Source: Saccharolobus islandicus REY15A (GTDB taxonomy: Archaea; Thermoproteota; Thermoprotei_A; Sulfolobales; Sulfolobaceae). From it: 64,000 bases of DNA. Positions 3,250-62,429 of the stretch are shown here, piece by piece. Positions within the stretch are counted from its first letter, which is position 1, and every line of letters begins with the position of its first letter. Below the pieces are notes generated by a model, which saw only the letters and a list, made by a program, of their open reading frames with translations, did no database searches and was not told the DNA's origin. The stretch lies in NCBI RefSeq assembly GCF_000189555.1, contig NC_017276.1; one strand, 5' to 3'. The position numbers and the translations under genes were made by a program.

Positions 3250-3876
3250 GTGTTTATAGATAATTTGGGTTTAATGTTATTTATATTGCCGTTAGTATCA
3301 GTGTTAATAGCTTATACTACAATTCAAGCTTTCATAGGATTTAGAAAAAGCGGTTATGAGGCAATAAAAAGAAGCCTTGACGATTCCATACTTCCCGCTG
3401 CGATTTTGGGTATAATAATCATAATACTCAGCCTATGGGGAGAATTCACTTGGACATTACCGGGTAGTTATAATATATTATTTTATGACGTATACCTATT
3501 ACTTGGTATAACGATCCTCTCCTATTCAATTGCTGTATACATAGGAAAGAGATTACAAAGTACTGGAATATTCTCGTTATTCGTAGGCTTAATAACTATT
3601 TACTACGGTGTTTCTGGTTATAATTTAGGACTTACTAAGGAACCGTTGGCATTATTAGCACTATACGTTACTTACGGAATAGCTGGTATTTTAGGATATC
3701 CAGTAACCTTAGCGTTAGATAAGCTTAGAGATCAACAAGGAGTTAAGGATCCAAAGCTAGAAGGATGGATGTACGCTTTTTTCCTATTATTTTGGATATT
3801 TGTTGTGATTGCGGGAATTATAGGCGCGTTCATCGCTGTTGAGACTATCCCGGCCCATCTAGCACATCCTCCATAA
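3250..3876 (+). CDS. DUF981-like membrane protein
   Basis: Multi-TM ORF, likely GTG start at 3250 (VFIDNLGLM), with SYNILFYDVY motif recalled from DUF981 proteins. Confidence 0.6.
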   Translation: MFIDNLGLMLFILPLVSVLIAYTTIQAFIGFRKSGYEAIKRSLDDSILPAAILGIIIIILSLWGEFTWTLPGSYNILFYDVYLLLGITILSYSIAVYIGKRLQSTGIFSLFVGLITIYYGVSGYNLGLTKEPLALLALYVTYGIAGILGYPVTLALDKLRDQQGVKDPKLEGWMYAFFLLFWIFVVIAGIIGAFIAVETIPAHLAHPP

Positions 3877-3988
3877 AAGGTATTTTTCTTTAATCTTTTT
3901 TATCGGTACCGGAAAACTTCTAATTTGCGAGAGAAGATTAAGTCCAACATGTAGAAAGATATATTAGAAATCCTTGTAAAAGGATAAT

Positions 3989-6027: not shown

Positions 6028-6558
6028 ATGGATGGAAAATCTTTGCTTCAAGGTAATATAATTAGTTTGATTGCCTCACTTATCATATTATATGGACTAA
6101 TTCTCCTATTAGAGAACGGTATTTATTTTGCCTTATCTAAAGTTTTTCTAATCCTTATGACTTTCGTATGGATATTAGCAGTACCGTCTTATCTCAGCTA
6201 TCGGAGAAGTGGATTAAAAAAACAGTGGATCTTGAATTATTTTGCAATTCTTGCAATAATAATAACGTTTATAGGGATGATTATTGCATATACGGGAAAT
6301 TTCTTGGGAGTAGAAATTATAGTATTAGGATATATATTTGAACCAATAGCTGGAATATCAATATATTTAACAACGTTAGGTTTTTCCAAAACATACTCCT
6401 CCTTATTCTTCTGGGGTGCAGTAGTGTTTACCATCGGATTGCCTTTATATCTGAGTAGTTTGGGGATAGTCGCGATAATAGGAGATATAGTAAAAATGAT
6501 AGGAATAGTAGGGTTGATGATGATAGCCAGAAAGACTTATCTAGCAAAACCAAGTTAG
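6028..6558 (+). CDS. Hypothetical membrane protein
   Basis: 176-aa ORF with about 6 hydrophobic segments; no recognisable motif. Confidence 0.6.
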   Translation: MDGKSLLQGNIISLIASLIILYGLILLLENGIYFALSKVFLILMTFVWILAVPSYLSYRRSGLKKQWILNYFAILAIIITFIGMIIAYTGNFLGVEIIVLGYIFEPIAGISIYLTTLGFSKTYSSLFFWGAVVFTIGLPLYLSSLGIVAIIGDIVKMIGIVGLMMIARKTYLAKPS

Positions 6559-7073: not shown

Positions 7074-7526
7074 ATGATAGCCCTCCAAAAGATAAGGGAA
7101 GAGGAAGAGAAGGAAAAAGAAATTAAGAGAAAATTAGGAATAGCTAAGACGATCGAATTGCCTATAGGAGGTTCCATATTTTATTTTGATATTCCAGATC
7201 ATCCAATGGTTTACGTTAGTGAGACGAATGGGGTTATGTATATAAACGGATCAGCCTATTGGGAACCTCAACTCCTTATGTTGAAAGACCTGACTAACGA
7301 ATTCTTAAATCAAACCATAGAGTTAGCAAAGGCCATCGGTAAAACCATAACTAAGATTGATGACATTCAGCTGGGATTGGATGAGAGGAAAAATGTTGAG
7401 AAGAGAAAATTTTATGTTTTAATTGGAGATAACATAGAGATTGGCTTCTATTATAACCTTTATTCACCCGATGGAAAGAGAAATGGTATAGTAGAGATGA
7501 TACCTTACTACAAGCAGTATAAATAA
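7074..7526 (+). CDS. Hypothetical soluble protein
   Basis: 150-aa ORF with typical codon usage, first gene of a same-strand run; no motif recognised. Confidence 0.65.
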   Translation: MIALQKIREEEEKEKEIKRKLGIAKTIELPIGGSIFYFDIPDHPMVYVSETNGVMYINGSAYWEPQLLMLKDLTNEFLNQTIELAKAIGKTITKIDDIQLGLDERKNVEKRKFYVLIGDNIEIGFYYNLYSPDGKRNGIVEMIPYYKQYK

Positions 7527-10370: not shown

Positions 10371-11528
10371 TTATTGATTTCCTTTTTTTATACCATTTTC
10401 TTTAAATTTCGGTATTAGATTGATTGGATAAGATTGCCTTATATTCCATTTGTCAGTCTTAAATGGTTCTCCATCTATTGTAATTACTCTTTCAGCTACG
10501 ATATCACAATATTTACATTCCTTGCAACTTCTCGTATCGCAATCGTTGGTAAGGAAGAACTTTATCCATCCCTCAGGGAACTTTGTATTGTCTATCTTCA
10601 CTTTAGTTAGTACAGAATAGGATGATGGCCCATTAACCATCTGAATAGCCTTTGTTGCCGCTCTCCCTTGAGGGTAGCTAACAAGATCTAAGAGATCTCC
10701 TTCATACCTTCTCTCAGCAAAAGCCTTAACCACGTTCAATATCCATTCTGTCTTTTTATTTCTCCCAGCGATCTTAAACCTATTTATCCCTATCTCCTCA
10801 TAGTATTTTATATCCTCTGGCCTAATCCACCTACTCCTTATCAAATTTACTGGATCGTTTAAGACATCAGTTGCACATAATAATATAGGATACTCAAACC
10901 AAACGTCATTCACTCCGTTTACCATAGAAGTAATTGATGAAATTCCGTCATGTGTAAGCCTAAACGGGCAACCGTAAAGACAAGAATTGTTGAGTATTAA
11001 CTCCACGTCGAATTTATTAGTTTTAGATAATGAAGCAATCTCCTTTAATAATTTGAAATCCCTATTTGCATCCTCATGCATAATAATAGTGTTTACACCT
11101 AAATTCGCATACTCCTCAACTTCCCTCACATTGCGAATTCTAGAAAACGATGAGGCTGATACTTCTAAGTCAGGGTATTCGCTTCTTATTAGCCTAATAA
11201 GAAAGGGTACTGCTATTATGAAACCATCAACTCCTAGACTTACTAACTTGTCGATCTCTTTCATTACTTTACCAATAAATTCTGCATCATATTCCTTGCC
11301 TAATAATGTGTTAGTATTCATTGTGTAAAGGAATTTTATGCCATAAGAGTGTGCTATACTAATGTGATTCTTGAACTGTTCTTCCTTAATATCGGGTATG
11401 ATAAAACCAGCCCTACCGTGTCCAGTTATTGTCCTCTTAAAACTTCCAAAAATGTATTTAACCTCTGGATACTTTTTTAATTCTTCCAATAGGGAATCAT
11501 CGAAATTTGTAGCAACTACCAGCTTCAT
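10371..11528 (-). CDS. Peptidase U32-family Fe-S protein
   Basis: [14 protein letters not shown] and FKIAGR motifs plus C-terminal C-x4-CKECKYC cluster. Confidence 0.85.
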
Positions 11529-15533: not shown

Positions 15534-15842
15534 GTGGAATATGATGACATTACTTCAGCCTATGAGAGTAAGGGTAACAAGATTGTGGTTGACGCAGTTA
15601 CTTTAGACTCTCTTGGCCTAAAAAAGGTAAATTTATTAAAGATTGATGTCGAGCGTGGTGAATTGGAAGTATTGAAAGGAACCACGAATACCTTAGATAT
15701 AACTGATAAAATTTTGATAGAAGTTAGGAAGGAGTTAGAAAAAGATATAAACTCGTTATTACGTGCAAAGGGATTTAAACTAGTTAAAGTCGACATGACT
15801 TATGATAATATTGGAAATTTCTTATATAAGAGAGCTTCATAG
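15534..15842 (+). pseudogene. FkbM-family methyltransferase C-terminal fragment
   Basis: VDAVTLDSL..LLKIDVE.GELEVLKG motif; N-terminal SAM-binding half missing. Confidence 0.7.
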
Positions 15843-37440: not shown

Positions 37441-37835
37441 CTTTCAGTATTGCTAAAAGGGGGTATATAAATTAAACTGATTAAAAGAGAGAGTAATTTT
37501 TAATCTAATTGTGAATTAGGAAATACCAGAAATCTCCAATATTCTCTAATTATATTTCTCTAATTTACTAGAGTCGATGTAACTAGATAAGAGGAAAAAC
37601 GACTTATACGATATTATATATACATTATTTATGCGGTGTGTTTTTTGACATATAATAATTCTGAGAAAAAATTGACAATTCATCCTAGTTCATCTCTCCT
37701 GAGGTCACCAATTCAGTAAGAGTTCAATCCCGCATTTACTAACTACGAAATCATTACCTCTCAAACTGTACGATTAGCGTACGTTTCTTTAGATATTACT
37801 TTAAAAAGACCTATCTTATTTCGTAAATAATTTGT

Positions 37836-55192: not shown

Positions 55193-55228
55193 AAATATAA
55201 ATAAAAAATTAAGTTAACTTTTGTTCAC

Positions 55229-56704
55229 TTAAGCTTTAGGATTAGGCATCTGATCGATTATATCCTTAACCAATTTGACGAATTCGTGCTTTCTATCCTT
55301 GAATACCTCAGTATAAGTTTGAGCCCATCTTATTGTGGGATCACCCCTACTGAACCTATCATATTGTTCATATCTCATCCCTGCTTCAGATCCTATAACG
55401 TCCCACAGTAGGTTAAACGTCTTAACTCTTTCTAGGGCATCAAGATCTTTCATTGCCATGTACTTATCCAATAATTTTCTTTCCTCGGGATTTTCAAAAT
55501 CTTTAATACCAGCAGGTATAGGTATTGATGATCCTGCACTAATTAACCTTAATATCTCATTTGCTCTGGGAACTGTCTTCATGTTGAAGTGACTGGCTGA
55601 AATGGAAATATAGGGATCTGGTCTAGTAATATTGGGCAATTCTTGGGCTCTTTCAACTGATGCATAGAGGGCTGCCTCATTTAGAGCTACATATATCAGT
55701 ATCTCACCTATCTTTTCTTGAACGTTAATGAAATTACTGGTGCCAGAAGCTTCAGCAATGGCGATAGCTAAACCAGCAAGGAATTTTAACCTGCTATAAT
55801 GTTGAATTACGAAGTGCCAGTTAAACCATCCCCTTAACTGAACGGTGTGCCACATTAGGTCTTCGATTAACTCAGGCTTCTTGAAGAATATTATTCTTTC
55901 CCAAGGAATTAGGACGTTATCTAACACTAAAATTGCATCGGATTCCTCAAATCTAGAAGATATTGGGTATTCGAATTCTCCTCCTTCCCTAGGCTGGAAC
56001 CCCCTTCTAGACAAGAACTTAACTCCTTTAGTGTTTGTTGGGATAGAGAAGTATATTGCATATCTAGGATCACTATCTCTTCTGACATTTGGTAGATACC
56101 ATAACATCTCCGCATAAGGACCGGCGGTACATATCATTGCGGCTCCTCTTACTACTACACCTTCTGGTTTTTCCTCAACTATTCCCACTTGAATGTATGG
56201 ATCTTCCCATTGAGAAGGTGGTCTAGATCTATCGTACATTGGGGCCACAATTGCGTGAGTATAGAACAAATCTCTCTTTGTAGCTTCTTTGTAAATTTCA
56301 ATCGCATTTTCCATGAACTTTGAACCGAACTGTTTTCCAAAGTAGTCTTCAGCGTGTGCATAGAATACCATTGTCCATAAGTTTAGGTAGTCTGGACTTC
56401 TACCGAAGAATCCCCTATAGTAATCATATATCTTTACTAGGCCATCCCTTAATTTGCCTAAATCTTTCTTGTTTTTAGGTCTTAGAAAACTTATGCTAGT
56501 TTCCTCTCCCACATCAAGGTTATAAATCCTTAGGTACTCCTTATATTTCTCATCCCAATGTAGATCATAATATTTCGCAACAGTAGATATCGGTATTTTA
56601 AATGCTGAATGTTCTGTAACATCCTTTACTACTTCTCCTTCATAGTAAACTACTGGTGGGTTTTCCTTTATACTTTTTATGTAATCTGTTCCCCTTCTTA
56701 TCAT
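55229..56704 (-). CDS. hpaB: 4-hydroxyphenylacetate 3-monooxygenase, oxygenase component
   Basis: [40 protein letters not shown]; start ATG 56704 overlaps the hpaD stop (ATGA). Confidence 0.92.
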
Positions 56705-57651
56705 CCAGACCACCTCTTTAATTGACCCGTGGAAATATCCTCCACGGGAACCCATTCAGTTAACCAAGATTGAGGAATCGGCCTTCCCCAAAAATCACTT
56801 CTATACCTTAATTGATCATAGGTCCAAACTATTGGTTTCCACTTATCCGGATCCAGAACCACGTAATCGTTGGTGAAGAACTCAATTCTATTTTTATCAA
56901 AATCTCTCAAATAAATATAATAACCCTCAGTTACACCATGTCTACCGGGACCCCTTTCTATACTATCCCACAATCCCACTGAGGCTAGAATATCTGGGGC
57001 TTTAATGACATCTTTTACATCATGAACGTAATACGTCTCATGGTGAAATCCCGGAACGTTTTTACTTGACTTCGCTATTGCTATTTCGTGTGAATCCCCT
57101 CTTCTAGTTAACCACACTACTGTCAAATTCCCATCCTTATCCAAGAACCTCTCAGTCTCATAATAACCCATGAATCTCTTAAAGAACTCCAATTCTCTCT
57201 CCAAGTCCTTAACCATATAATTTACGTGGGCTAACCTGACTGGACTCACTCCCCTATGCCTATGAAATGCTAATCTTAAATCGCCTACATACTCCATATC
57301 ATAGTATAGAAGTATTGGGATTCCTTCGGGGGATTCAAATAATAGAGCTTCATTAATACCCTTTTCCCTAAATTTCCTAACCTTATGACCTAGGTTTTCC
57401 AATTCTTCTCTGGCCTTATCTAATTCTTCTCCTTTACTTACCCTAAAGCCTATATACGATAAACCAGCCAAGTTGGCCTTTTTTAGTATTAAGCTATGAT
57501 GCTGACCTTCCTCAATCCCTCTCAAATAAATGTAATCGCCATCCTTTTCTGTCTCCACAAATCCTAAGAGTTCTGAGTAGAAGTATCTCGCCTTATCCAA
57601 ATCGCTAACTCTTATACACACATGAGATGTACGTAAAATGTTGATCATCAA
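56701..57651 (-). CDS. hpaD: Homoprotocatechuate/catechol 2,3-dioxygenase (VOC family)
   Basis: [35 protein letters not shown]. Confidence 0.9.
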
Positions 57652-57686
57652 ACACTATCAAGTGCAAAAAGATAAATTAATTCACT

Positions 57687-57702
57687 ATTAAACTGATTTA
57701 AG
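57687..57702. promoter_or_regulatory. Putative operator box upstream of hpaD
   Basis: ATTAAACTGATTTAAG, 36 nt upstream of the start codon, just upstream of the TATA position. Confidence 0.6.
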
Positions 57703-57703
57703 G

Positions 57704-58171
57704 TTATCTACATAACTTCCAATAATTTCTATTGTAATAGACTAAGGGTGAGAAATTATCTCTAACAACCTTTCCATTAATTACCTCACCAACTACAATG
57801 GTGTGATCACCAATATCAATAGTCTTATACTTCTTAACTTCCATGTAAGCGTAACTGTCAGCCAATACGGGTATTCCATCTAAACCTTCGAAGAACTTTA
57901 CCTCCTTGAATCTCTCCTTTACGGGCTTAAAGGCAAATGTATTGAAGATTTTTTCGTCATCGACAAAATTTACTATAAAACCATTACTCTCGATAAAAGG
58001 TACATCATTACCCTTAGTTTTATCTGCGGTAAACATAACTAATGGTGGATTTAAAGAAAGCGAATTAAATGTGTTGACCGTCATTCCTACTAAATTATCA
58101 CTCCATTTAGTTGTAACTACTACTATTCCTAACGGAAATAATCTCATTATATTCCTTATCGTCTCGCTCAT
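57704..58171 (-). CDS. hpaC: Flavin reductase (HpaC)
   Basis: GMTVNTFNSLSLNPPLV, GDHTIVVGEV, PLVY. Confidence 0.92.
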   Translation of the reverse strand: MSETIRNIMRLFPLGIVVVTTKWSDNLVGMTVNTFNSLSLNPPLVMFTADKTKGNDVPFIESNGFIVNFVDDEKIFNTFAFKPVKERFKEVKFFEGLDGIPVLADSYAYMEVKKYKTIDIGDHTIVVGEVINGKVVRDNFSPLVYYNRNYWKLCR

Positions 58172-58207
58172 GAGAGTATATACTTAAAAAAATTATTTAA
58201 GTTTATC

Positions 58208-58223
58208 ATTAAACTGAGTTGAT
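58208..58223. promoter_or_regulatory. Putative operator box upstream of hpaC
   Basis: ATTAAACTGAGTTGAT, 37 nt upstream of the start codon. Confidence 0.55.
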
Positions 58224-58226
58224 GTC

Positions 58227-59705
58227 TTAGGGTGAAACCTCATCCAATCTCTTATTAGCAGACCTATGTCCTATTGCTATTGCAATTATTGTTGAAATTA
58301 CTTGGAATAAGGCTATTAGCAAAAACACCTCTATTGCCAAAGCTGTAGTGACCCCAGAAGCTATCAGAGAACCTATGAAAGAGGAAATTGCAATGATCCC
58401 TATCCCACCCCCTATATGACCTACACCGTCACATAAGGCGAAACCAGTACTCCTAGCCCTAGTCGGAAAACTCTCAGCAGTCCAAGCGTATGATATTGGA
58501 ACCCATAAATTAAAACCATAAAAGAGAATTATAGATCCTAGGAAAGATAATGCTATGTTAGTACCAGCTATAGCTATTAATAATCCCCCAATTATTGTGA
58601 AGACTACTGAAATGACTGTCCACGTCTTTCTTTCAAGTCTATCTCCAACAAAGAAGGTTGTTATAGGAACTAATATGAAACCTATAACACCTATTGCCGC
58701 AATCATTCCAGCTTCTGGTGGAGCAAATCCCAGTGAGGCTAATACAGATGTTAAACCAGCTGCCAAGGTATAGACGGTCATATAACCAAATAACCACATT
58801 GAGACAAGTATTCCAAACCTCTTTATATAAAGTGAGGAACTAAATATGGTCTTTAATGCATCTAAATAGGAATATCTCTCTGCAATATAAGGCTGAATTA
58901 TATTGGGTAATGGTGGGAGATTACCTAACTTGTCAGTAGCTTTCTTCTCCATCACCTCAACTATCCTTTCAGCTTCAGTTAATTTACCCTTAGATATTAA
59001 CCATCTTGGAGATTCAGGTAAGCTAAACCTTAAGAGCAATCCTATTAAAGTCAATAACGCACCTATCCCGTACATTACTCTCCATCCATTAACCGCAAAG
59101 AACCCACTTCCACCAAGTGCAAACGGTAATCCAAGAGGAAATGGAGCAGAGGGCGTTGTTAAGAACAATCCTAACCATATGCCTAGTGCTGCGCCTAGTG
59201 TTGAAAATAAGAATACTAGACTAGTGTATCTAGCCCTTCCGTTAATGGGAGCTACTTCTCCAATATAAGTATTAACTATTGCTAAATCAGCACCAACACC
59301 AATACCAGTTATGGTCCTTGCTACTAAAAAGTTAACATAATTATTCGCCAATGCGTTATATAAACTGCCAAGGCCTGTAATGATCATAGTTATCATTAGC
59401 ATCCTCCTCCTGCCTATTACGTCAGATATTGGAGAAAGTATAAGGGCTCCTATTATATACCCTACTAGGTTTAATAGGACTATGGGGCCTAGTAATGCTG
59501 GAATCTGAGGAGAAGTTGGATTGCTAACGTGAAATAGCGTTAATGCCGTTTGTATAAATGATACATTTATATCGAAAATGTCATAAAATGTGAAGAGAAA
59601 CCCTATACCTAATATTCCTATAAAAATATATGAAAGTCCCCATATTGGGATTCTATCCATTCTAGCAATCACTTCCCCTGCTTTTACTGCAGCTTTTTCT
59701 GCCAT
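58227..59705 (-). CDS. MFS aromatic acid transporter (AAHS-like)
   Basis: RMDRIP, YDIFDI, SDVIGRR, GVGADL..YIGE, LPESPRWL, ESFPTRAR. Confidence 0.88.
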   Translation of the reverse strand: MAEKAAVKAGEVIARMDRIPIWGLSYIFIGILGIGFLFTFYDIFDINVSFIQTALTLFHVSNPTSPQIPALLGPIVLLNLVGYIIGALILSPISDVIGRRRMLMITMIITGLGSLYNALANNYVNFLVARTITGIGVGADLAIVNTYIGEVAPINGRARYTSLVFLFSTLGAALGIWLGLFLTTPSAPFPLGLPFALGGSGFFAVNGWRVMYGIGALLTLIGLLLRFSLPESPRWLISKGKLTEAERIVEVMEKKATDKLGNLPPLPNIIQPYIAERYSYLDALKTIFSSSLYIKRFGILVSMWLFGYMTVYTLAAGLTSVLASLGFAPPEAGMIAAIGVIGFILVPITTFFVGDRLERKTWTVISVVFTIIGGLLIAIAGTNIALSFLGSIILFYGFNLWVPISYAWTAESFPTRARSTGFALCDGVGHIGGGIGIIAISSFIGSLIASGVTTALAIEVFLLIALFQVISTIIAIAIGHRSANKRLDEVSP

Positions 59706-59739
59706 ATTTGGCCTTTCAAATCAATAATTTAATATTCTA

Positions 59740-59757
59740 TATTAAACTAGTTTAATA
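59740..59757. promoter_or_regulatory. Perfect 18-bp palindrome, putative operator
   Basis: TATTAAACTAGTTTAATA; core begins 36 nt upstream of the MFS start, in the region divergent from the HTH regulator. Confidence 0.65.
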
Positions 59758-59836
59758 AACACACGACTAATAGTATACTATATTATAGTTTCTTATAATA
59801 CATAACATTTATATTTTTAAAGAGTTTAAATAGTAC

Positions 59837-60469
59837 ATGATTAACTTGATTAAACATGTAGATATAGTTGTAAGCCATGAAGATTGTTGGACTTCACACA
59901 TGCCATTTACCGCATATACTATTAATTTAGAAGTTTATCCACATAAGAACTATTTAAGGAGTAGGATTCTTATCGATTCAATGGAAAATAAGGTTATATC
60001 AAACTTAATGAAAACACACAGAAGCGTTATAAAGGTTATGAAGGTAGATAGGTTTAAGGGAGGAACTTATGTGGATTTTTTAAATAAATACAAGGGATCA
60101 ATAGCTGGGGTCCTCTACGATAAGGAAGTGTTGATTCTGGGTAATCTCATAGAAGGTAAAGACGAAAAATGGTCATTTGTAACTTCCAGCAAAAATCTTC
60201 GAGAGATTCTTACTGAGATCGAAAGTTTAGGAAAGGTGAAAAGAGTGGAGACAACTGACTTTAACCCAATTCTCTACCCTAATCTGACTGAATGGGAAAA
60301 GAAAGTGCTTACGGTATCCTATTCCTATGGTTATTTAGACTATCCCAGAAGAGCAACTGCCGATGAATTAGCTGAGCTACTAGGAATAAGTAAAGTAACG
60401 TTCCTCTATCATTTGAGAAATGCCCAAAGGAAGTTAATTGCGTTTTTCATAAAAAACATTTTAGCTTAG
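59837..60469 (+). CDS. HTH-10 (bacterio-opsin activator-type) transcription regulator
   Basis: C-terminal LTEWE.KVL..SY.YGY.DYPRR.T..ELA..LGISK.T..YHLR.A..KL. Confidence 0.9.
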   Translation: MINLIKHVDIVVSHEDCWTSHMPFTAYTINLEVYPHKNYLRSRILIDSMENKVISNLMKTHRSVIKVMKVDRFKGGTYVDFLNKYKGSIAGVLYDKEVLILGNLIEGKDEKWSFVTSSKNLREILTEIESLGKVKRVETTDFNPILYPNLTEWEKKVLTVSYSYGYLDYPRRATADELAELLGISKVTFLYHLRNAQRKLIAFFIKNILA

Positions 60470-62329: not shown

Positions 62330-62429
62330 GTTATCATATACATTTGTAAATTAAAAATTATATATACCTTTCGTTCAATAATGATAGATTGATATAAGAT
62401 TTAAAAGTTATTAAATGTAGGATAAATAT

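Follow-up and report, generated by a model that had tools for sequence, protein, structure and literature searches.

Described operators and regulators of related kind

The ara-box of the Sulfolobales, served by the activator XylR (Saci_2116), is a short AAC-N2-GTT palindrome which lies directly upstream of the transcription factor B recognition element (BRE) and TATA box of catabolic transporter and enzyme genes, and which is conserved in this order. Activation from it is thought to work via recruitment of transcription factor B (TFB) to a weak BRE (PMC5512572, PMC7264815). Here we describe an element of the same class of placement, the hpa-box, to which the ara-box with XylR is the nearest known system, in a stretch of 64,000 nucleotides (nt) from Saccharolobus islandicus REY15A (contig NC_017276.1 of assembly GCF_000189555.1), referred to below as the window. 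It stands upstream of three genes of an aromatic-acid (homoprotocatechuate) cluster, which encode a transporter, an HpaC-like flavin reductase and the dioxygenase HpaD. Divergent from the transporter gene is that of a protein with an HTH_10 domain, the candidate regulator.

Both elements are palindromes set immediately upstream of BRE and TATA box, the hpa-box being followed by a gap of 6–7 nt and a TATA box in all 38 of the promoters aligned below, but they are not the same. The ara-box is the octamer AACATGTT and goes with pentoses, whereas the hpa-box goes with aromatic acids, extends over 16 bp (TAAAC-TA-GTTTA, with TA and not AT at the centre) and has conserved flanks. Its core is AACTAGTT or AATCAGTT. 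The window has two exact copies of the ara-box octamer (1267 and 46851), in neither case in the hpa cluster.

Box geometry like that at the hpa promoters is also known from other archaea. The activators TFB-RF1 (PF1088), from Pyrococcus furiosus, and EarA, from Methanococcus, bind just ahead of the BRE and offset a weak BRE by recruiting TFB (PMC5512572). Their targets are different ones and they go under other names; the likeness is one of geometry. Bat, the bacterio-opsin activator of Halobacterium and founder of the Pfam family HTH_10, is a transcriptional activator of large size, whose sensor domains are of the GAF and PAS types. The hpa regulator likewise carries HTH_10 at its C-terminus, but it is only 210 residues long and has an N-terminal alpha/beta domain in which Pfam finds neither GAF nor PAS, and it is thus not Bat-type in the strict sense.

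The bacterial pathway is under different regulators. HpaA of Escherichia coli W is an activator of the hpa pathway from the AraC/XylS family. HpaR of the same strain, a repressor of the MarR family, controls the same route, from 4-hydroxyphenylacetate via homoprotocatechuate to meta-cleavage (PMC7180172), and both proteins probably have similar ligands. The folds and the promoter logic of both are unrelated to those seen here, and the archaeal regulator has no MarR- or AraC-type domain, HTH_10 being all that Pfam finds in it.

Full-text literature searches for the motif, for HTH_10 in Sulfolobus, for homoprotocatechuate in Sulfolobus, for saci_2294-2296 and for SSO2053-2057, with subscription journals outside their coverage, returned no description of the regulator or of the box, in agreement with an earlier note on this sequence, which knew of no description of the box. 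Nor did they return an operator, ligand or regulon for any Sulfolobales member of the HTH_10 family.

The hpa-box, its position and its conservation

The window contains three copies of the box, with exactly the sequences and starting positions (57687, 58208 and 59741) that the earlier note had reported. The copy serving the transporter gene, hpa-box 3 (59741-59756, ATTAAACTAGTTTAAT), lies inside a perfect 18-bp palindrome (59740-59757), also correctly noted before; it is 35 nt from the ATG of the transporter (59705) and 80 nt from that of the regulator (59837). The second copy, hpa-box 2 (58208-58223, minus strand; ATTAAACTGAGTTGAT on the plus strand and ATCAACTCAGTTTAAT on the gene strand), serves hpaC. 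It begins 3 nt past the transporter stop codon and ends 36 nt short of the hpaC ATG (58171), and its distal half is degenerate (AAC-TCA-GTT, with a 3-nt spacer). The third, hpa-box 1 (57687-57702, minus strand; plus-strand ATTAAACTGATTTAAG, gene-strand CTTAAATCAGTTTAAT), serves hpaD, beginning 1 nt past the hpaC stop codon and ending 38 nt short of the hpaD ATG (57648). On the gene strand all three have the same promoter-proximal end, AGTTTAAT, which bears out the idea of an invariant 8-mer, and in each the conserved half is the one nearer to the promoter. The offsets of 36, 37 and 36 nt previously given for hpaD, hpaC and the transporter gene are right if hpaD starts at the TTG at 57651. Its orthologues, however, start at the ATG corresponding to 57648, which makes the hpaD offset 39 nt and the true range 36–39 nt.

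Beside each box there is a TATA-like octamer, 6–7 nt downstream, as had been seen before. In the transporter promoter (59727-59740, minus strand) the BRE slot is atagaa (59740-59735) and the TATA box tattaaat (59734-59727). The hpaC promoter (58193-58207, minus strand) has gataaac (58207-58201) and ttaaataa (58200-58193) in these places, and the hpaD promoter (57673-57686, minus strand) agtgaa (57686-57681) and ttaattta (57680-57673). The 55-nt gaps upstream of hpaC and hpaD are fully occupied, by the stop codon, the 16-nt box, a BRE slot of 6–7 nt, a TATA box of 8 nt, about 21 nt more and the ATG.

An alignment on the box of 38 promoters from 17 loci gives a common order of box, BRE slot of 6–7 nt, TATA box, about 21 nt and ATG. 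The TATA box is seen as positions +8 to +14 past the box, where A/T makes up 89–100%, and the BRE slot as positions +4 to +7, where it makes up 53–66%. In each of the 38 promoters the box stays clear of both TATA box and start site, the gap being strictly 6–7 nt. Loss of the spacing in orthologues had been named beforehand as grounds for giving up the proposal; the distance from box to ATG is in fact 35–38 nt in 29 of the 38 promoters. In Sulfolobus the TATA box is centred about 26 nt upstream of the transcription start. Given this distance and the observed spacing from TATA box to ATG, the transporter, hpaC and hpaD transcripts are most likely leaderless, with the box at about −36 to −52 from the start codon.

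Orthologues of the regulator are found in Saccharolobus, Sulfolobus, Sulfurisphaera, Acidianus, Stygiolobus, Metallosphaera and Candidatus Aramenus. A search with the dioxygenase brought in those of S. acidocaldarius (AAY81582.1, whose gene adjoins saci_2295) and of one more Metallosphaera, and a profile search added regulator loci of Pyrobaculum oguniense and of a Thermofilaceae genome. The HTH_10 gene lies within a few kb of the HpaD and HpaB genes in 19 of the 20 regulator loci, from Saccharolobus to Pyrobaculum. The sole exception (L004) is a contig of 7.9 kb which carries the regulator without hpa genes or box, and which is too short to interpret.

In the orthologous loci the box follows the consensus T(T/G)AAAC-YR-GTTT(A/G/C)AT. 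It precedes the transporter, hpaC and hpaD genes in Saccharolobus, Sulfolobus, Sulfurisphaera, Acidianus, Stygiolobus, Metallosphaera, Aramenus and S. acidocaldarius. The copy at the transporter gene is kept in 12 loci and that at hpaD in 16 further loci, S. acidocaldarius and Pyrobaculum included, while for hpaC the position and the proximal half are kept in L001, L003, L009, L011 and L013. The hpaD genes of Pyrobaculum and the Thermofilaceae genome have a variant that is again a perfect palindrome, TCGAACTAGTTCGA, 7 nt ahead of a TATA-like tract. Where loci are rearranged the box moves with the genes: the transporter gene is co-directional with the regulator gene in L006-L008 and L017, and hpaD has come to lie behind an unrelated gene in L014 and L015, in both of which the box is retained. 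In L002 and L005, where hpaC has been joined to the transcript of the transporter gene, the box is missing. The core promoter of the regulator itself has no conserved box in those loci in which the regulator is not divergent from the transporter, and autoregulation is therefore not proposed.

Boxes of this kind in AT-rich intergenic DNA might be due to chance, or might be a generic core-promoter sequence. In line with such a view the 8-mer ATTAAACT shows no enrichment over the 64 kb of the window, with 10 occurrences against 8.4 expected. Composition alone therefore proves nothing, and the case rests on position and conservation; the earlier note, too, had named the fixed spacing as the evidence. 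An extended pattern occurs four times against 0.26 expected, but was drawn up after the sites had been seen. A weight matrix of 20 nt was built from 26 orthologous sites of other genera, with the window and its nearest relative excluded, and its scores were compared with 30 first-order Markov (Markov-1) simulations of the window, in which the best score had a mean of 14.3 and a maximum of 16.7. The transporter box has the top scores in the 64 kb (21.3 and 20.6 on the two strands) and the hpaD box, at 19.0, exceeds every simulation, so that these two are beyond chance on sequence alone. The hpaC box (14.8, fourth among distinct sites in the 64 kb) lies inside the null range and a site before an NCS1 permease gene (37469-37488, 16.8) at the top of it. 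The support for the hpaC box is therefore confined to its position and conservation.

A test that needs no matrix counted matches to the window palindrome, with up to four mismatches, in orthologous target promoters and in control upstream regions of the same loci. The palindrome is found in 20 of 34 target promoters as against 8 of 188 controls (Fisher p = 1.7e-13), and some of the controls are probably further targets. Other promoters of the same loci, those of the LigB, AMP-ligase and acyl-CoA dehydrogenase genes and the core promoter of the regulator, are without the box, and the palindromic core is kept even in Pyrobaculum DNA, with its 48% G+C. The reading by chance or generic promoter sequence is thus effectively refuted, and we give it a negligible probability. 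The hpa-box is a real and deeply conserved cis-element of the aromatic-acid (homoprotocatechuate) gene cluster.

The candidate regulator and its proposed mode of action

The candidate regulator (59837-60469, plus strand, 210 residues) is 100% identical to AGJ62204.1 of S. islandicus LAL14/1. Pfam identifies HTH_10 over its full model length at residues 150-202 (79.1 bits against a cut-off of 23.1) and no other domain, and no NCBIfam model matches. The AlphaFold model (predicted local distance difference test, pLDDT, 90.8) consists of an alpha/beta domain of 145 residues followed by the helix-turn-helix. The N-terminal domain, which has no Pfam annotation, is modelled as repeated beta-beta-alpha units. 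A fold search of the PDB with the model gave a weak best match (Ta1207, template modelling score, TM, 0.43) and no convincing relative of the N-terminal domain, and a sequence search of the PDB gave nothing relevant. The invariant residues of the regulator, H14, C17, W18, Y39-L40-R41 (the YLR motif) and D80-F81-L82-N83 (the DFLN motif), are candidates for the ligand site.

The protein belongs to an unnamed family, HExCW + HTH_10, of about 200–240 residues, to which it is similar over its full length, including the invariant H14, C17 and W18 and the C-terminal helix-turn-helix. The family has 326 representative clusters at E <= 1e-10, and most of the listed matches span nearly the whole profile. 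S. islandicus has at least two paralogues encoded outside the window, P0295 (217 residues) and P0303 (210 residues), which align with the regulator end to end at 28–31% identity and whose accession numbers in strain M.16.27 differ by 26.

The predicted recognition helix, SKVTFLYHLRNAQRK, is almost invariant across orthologues, in keeping with the invariant AAC/GTT core of the box. The second paralogues of Metallosphaera have the helix HHLRNAYRK and stand beside TGAAAC-type boxes, and the first paralogues of the same genomes stand beside TTAAAC or TTTAAC boxes. The Pyrobaculum-type helix SKSTVVYHLRNALKK is found beside CGAAC-type boxes. The flanks of the box thus appear to co-vary with the helix, but this is only suggestive because one Sulfurisphaera box breaks the pattern by having the G otherwise distinctive of the paralogue group of Metallosphaera.

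On the basis of these observations, we hypothesise that the hpa-box serves as operator for the HTH_10 protein encoded alongside it, which would be a dedicated one-component regulator. The regulator would bind as a dimer on two half-sites of 7–8 bp, of which the promoter-proximal one (GTTTAAT) is the better conserved. The box ends one BRE-length (6–7 bp) upstream of the TATA box, and the ligand-bound regulator would most likely aid there the assembly of TFB and the TATA-binding protein. Three separate promoters would be switched on, those of the aromatic-acid transporter gene, of hpaC and of the hpaD-hpaB operon. The signal, probably 4-hydroxyphenylacetate, homoprotocatechuate or a close aromatic acid, would be sensed by the conserved N-terminal domain.

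The model as a whole, in which the neighbouring HTH_10 regulator binds the box and activates the three promoters, we consider likely. Its parts differ in strength. Synteny and the suggestive co-variation make it quite probable that the neighbouring protein is what binds the hpa-box. The position of the box, by analogy with the ara-box, inclines us to an activator, with some reserve. An aromatic acid such as 4-hydroxyphenylacetate has about an even chance of being the ligand.

Several points weigh against this model, in addition to the aberrant Sulfurisphaera box and to the low score and irregular distal half of the hpaC box given above. Most of the related loci were collected via the regulator itself, so that the co-occurrence of box and regulator covers regulator-carrying genomes. 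From a site in contact with the BRE a bound protein could just as well obstruct TFB, and the regulator would then be a repressor, which free of ligand blocks the binding of TFB or the pre-initiation complex at the BRE and is released by an aromatic ligand. The box does directly adjoin the BRE slot at the hpa promoters. Archaeal repressors, however, typically overlap the BRE/TATA or the start site. The absence of any overlap with TATA box or start site in the aligned promoters, together with the strict gap, is the pattern reported for activator boxes such as the ara-box. The orthologous gene Sso2054 is barely expressed on either glucose or phenol (PMC7820114), and such silence in the absence of inducer speaks for a repressor, as does the role of the bacterial counterpart HpaR, which is one (PMC7180172). 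Among the clusters most strongly induced by 1-butanol and by nutrient excess is saci_2293-2295 (PMC8208165, PMC11486757). The expression data of these orthologues are compatible with a promoter kept silent until a specific signal arrives, but fail to separate activation from relief of repression. Overall we regard a repressor as rather unlikely.

The operator might also be real but bound by another factor, either a paralogous HExCW/HTH_10 protein or an unrelated regulator, the neighbouring gene being merely co-inherited. The paralogues of S. islandicus, with their identical architecture, could compete for the box sites, and a locus of S. shibatae (L018) has related boxes and no HTH_10 gene within 8 kb, although both an orthologue and a paralogue of the regulator are present elsewhere in that genome. 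Against such an arrangement, regulator and box stay together over about ten genera and through several rearrangements, as far as the Thermoproteales, and one Metallosphaera genome contains two pairs of regulator and cluster, each with its own flavour of box. We therefore think it improbable that another factor is the one that acts here.

A wider form of the activator model may be put forward as a speculation that we hold to be doubtful: that HExCW/HTH_10 proteins are general one-component activators of Thermoproteota, each paralogue reading its own AAC-N2-GTT variant one BRE-length upstream of the TATA box, so that the hpa-box, the boxes of the S. shibatae Rieske locus and possibly the ara-box with XylR would share one code. 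The protein family of XylR is not stated in the XylR paper or in the iModulon paper. No second S. acidocaldarius protein of the hpa regulator's family surfaced in the profile search and cluster look-ups.

To our knowledge, there are few crenarchaeal transcription factors for which operator, ligand and regulon are known. The present system joins a precise and deeply conserved operator to a candidate cognate regulator, in promoters of defined geometry, and it is present in the genetically tractable S. islandicus, S. acidocaldarius (saci_2293-2295) and S. solfataricus (Sso2054). The proposed regulation would account for the strong condition dependence of the "catechol" cluster of S. acidocaldarius. 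It could also yield a tightly off, aromatic-inducible promoter for expression in Sulfolobus, as the ara-box did, and would be a clean system in which to study how a BRE-adjacent archaeal activator recruits the basal transcription machinery.

Genes of the cluster, neighbouring promoters and further boxes

The genes served by the three boxes lie on the minus strand. The transporter (58227-59705, 492 residues) is of the major facilitator superfamily (MFS), its best family match being to aromatic acid/H+ symporters, below the family cut-off. The flavin reductase (57704-58171, 155 residues) matches Pfam Flavin_Reduct; the HpaC-type models of NCBIfam give it 42–89 bits, far below their cut-offs. The dioxygenase (56701-57648, 315 residues) is identified as a 3,4-dihydroxyphenylacetate (homoprotocatechuate) 2,3-dioxygenase, HpaD type I, as it passes the equivalog model TIGR02295 (432.5 bits against a cut-off of 321.4); it is 99% identical to AGJ62201.1 of S. 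islandicus LAL14/1.

The oxygenase component, an aromatic hydroxylase of the HpaB family (55229-56704, minus strand; Pfam HpaB_N and HpaB), reaches 328.6 bits with TIGR02309, the cut-off of which is 480.2. The matches of HpaB and HpaC indicate family membership only and do not fix the substrate. There is no box upstream of hpaB. Its start is most likely the ATG at 56704, where orthologous gene calls give 491 residues. This ATG shares bases with the stop codon of hpaD (ATGA), and a GAGGTG stands 7 nt before it, on which grounds hpaB is read as an internal operon gene, co-transcribed with hpaD.

The co-directional minus-strand genes of the region also include that of a LigB-type dioxygenase, in whose promoter the hpa-box was not found. 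At 55211-55220 (minus strand), upstream of this gene, there is a different palindrome, AAGTTAACTT, which abuts a tract TTTTTTAT. It is fully kept, as AAGTTAACTTA(A/G)TTTTTTATT, in L009 and L013, and incomplete in L001, which has the 3' part only (TTTAACTTAATTTTTTATT). The divergent promoters of an acetyl-CoA-synthetase-like gene and an acyl-CoA dehydrogenase gene (62330-62429) are well kept in L013 and lack the hpa-box, for which reason these two genes are probably outside the regulon despite their synteny in the closest relatives. Rfam gave no RNA family anywhere in the window.

A fourth, weaker copy had been claimed at 37471. The sequence exists (37471-37486, minus strand, gene-strand TTTTAATCAGTTTAAT), 30 nt before the ATG of the NCS1 permease (37440), and it is the site that scored 16.8 above, but it abuts ttatata and stands 6 nt closer to its gene than the other copies do. 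A metagenome scan for diverged NCS1 orthologues found only the proximal half, fused to the TATA box, in L022, and nothing in L023 and L024. With its different spacing, contact with the TATA box and lack of conservation, the site was rejected as a member of the regulon.

Related loci have the box at its usual spacing before additional genes. In Candidatus Acidianus copahuensis (L003) these are a pair encoding a fumarylacetoacetate (FAA) hydrolase and an aldehyde dehydrogenase, and in L014 and L015 a molybdopterin (molybdenum cofactor, MoCo) aldehyde oxidoreductase adjoining the regulator; the same oxidoreductase is divergent from the regulator in the Pyrobaculum and Thermofilaceae loci. S. acidocaldarius (L016) has a second good box, ATTTAACTTGTTTGAT, at 11307-11326 (score 16.8). 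It heads an operon, situated just downstream of saci_2293, whose products are a diiron/rubrerythrin-like protein, a zf-ChsH2 protein, an AMP-ligase of the PaaK type and a thioesterase. These additional boxed genes are compatible with an aromatic-acid catabolic regulon. A high-scoring match on the opposite strand inside the 3' end of hpaB (L009, L010) was set aside as a coincidence of coding sequence.

The S. shibatae locus L018 (CP077713.1) encodes a Rieske ring-hydroxylating dioxygenase, an MFS transporter and a paralogous extradiol dioxygenase. Its three related boxes, ATCAAACTTGTTTGAT, TTGAAACATGTTTTAG and CCGAACAAGTTTTAG, are at 3872-3891 and upstream of the genes starting at 6166 and 8001, and each ends 33 nt before the ATG. 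The second of them contains the exact ara-box octamer.

In the second, paralogous cluster of M. yellowstonensis (L006) the dioxygenase is preceded by tandem boxes (7179-7198 and 7148-7167), CATGAAACTTGTTTCAAC and, about 30 bp nearer the gene, CTGAAACTCATTTCAT. A near-perfect palindromic box, ATAAAACTAGTTTAAT (scores 20.4 and 17.5), is found in the Candidatus Acidianus copahuensis locus at 15713-15732, flanked by the genes of a molybdopterin oxidoreductase and an Amidohydro_2 protein, with no start codon at the usual distance. It is worth adding that two genes of related loci align as two overlapping pieces, namely the transporter gene of Sulfolobus sp. E5-1-F (L013, 6392-7868) and hpaB of Candidatus Acidianus copahuensis (L003, 5854-7325). 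This suggests frameshifts, either in pseudogenes or by sequencing errors; the box is intact in both.

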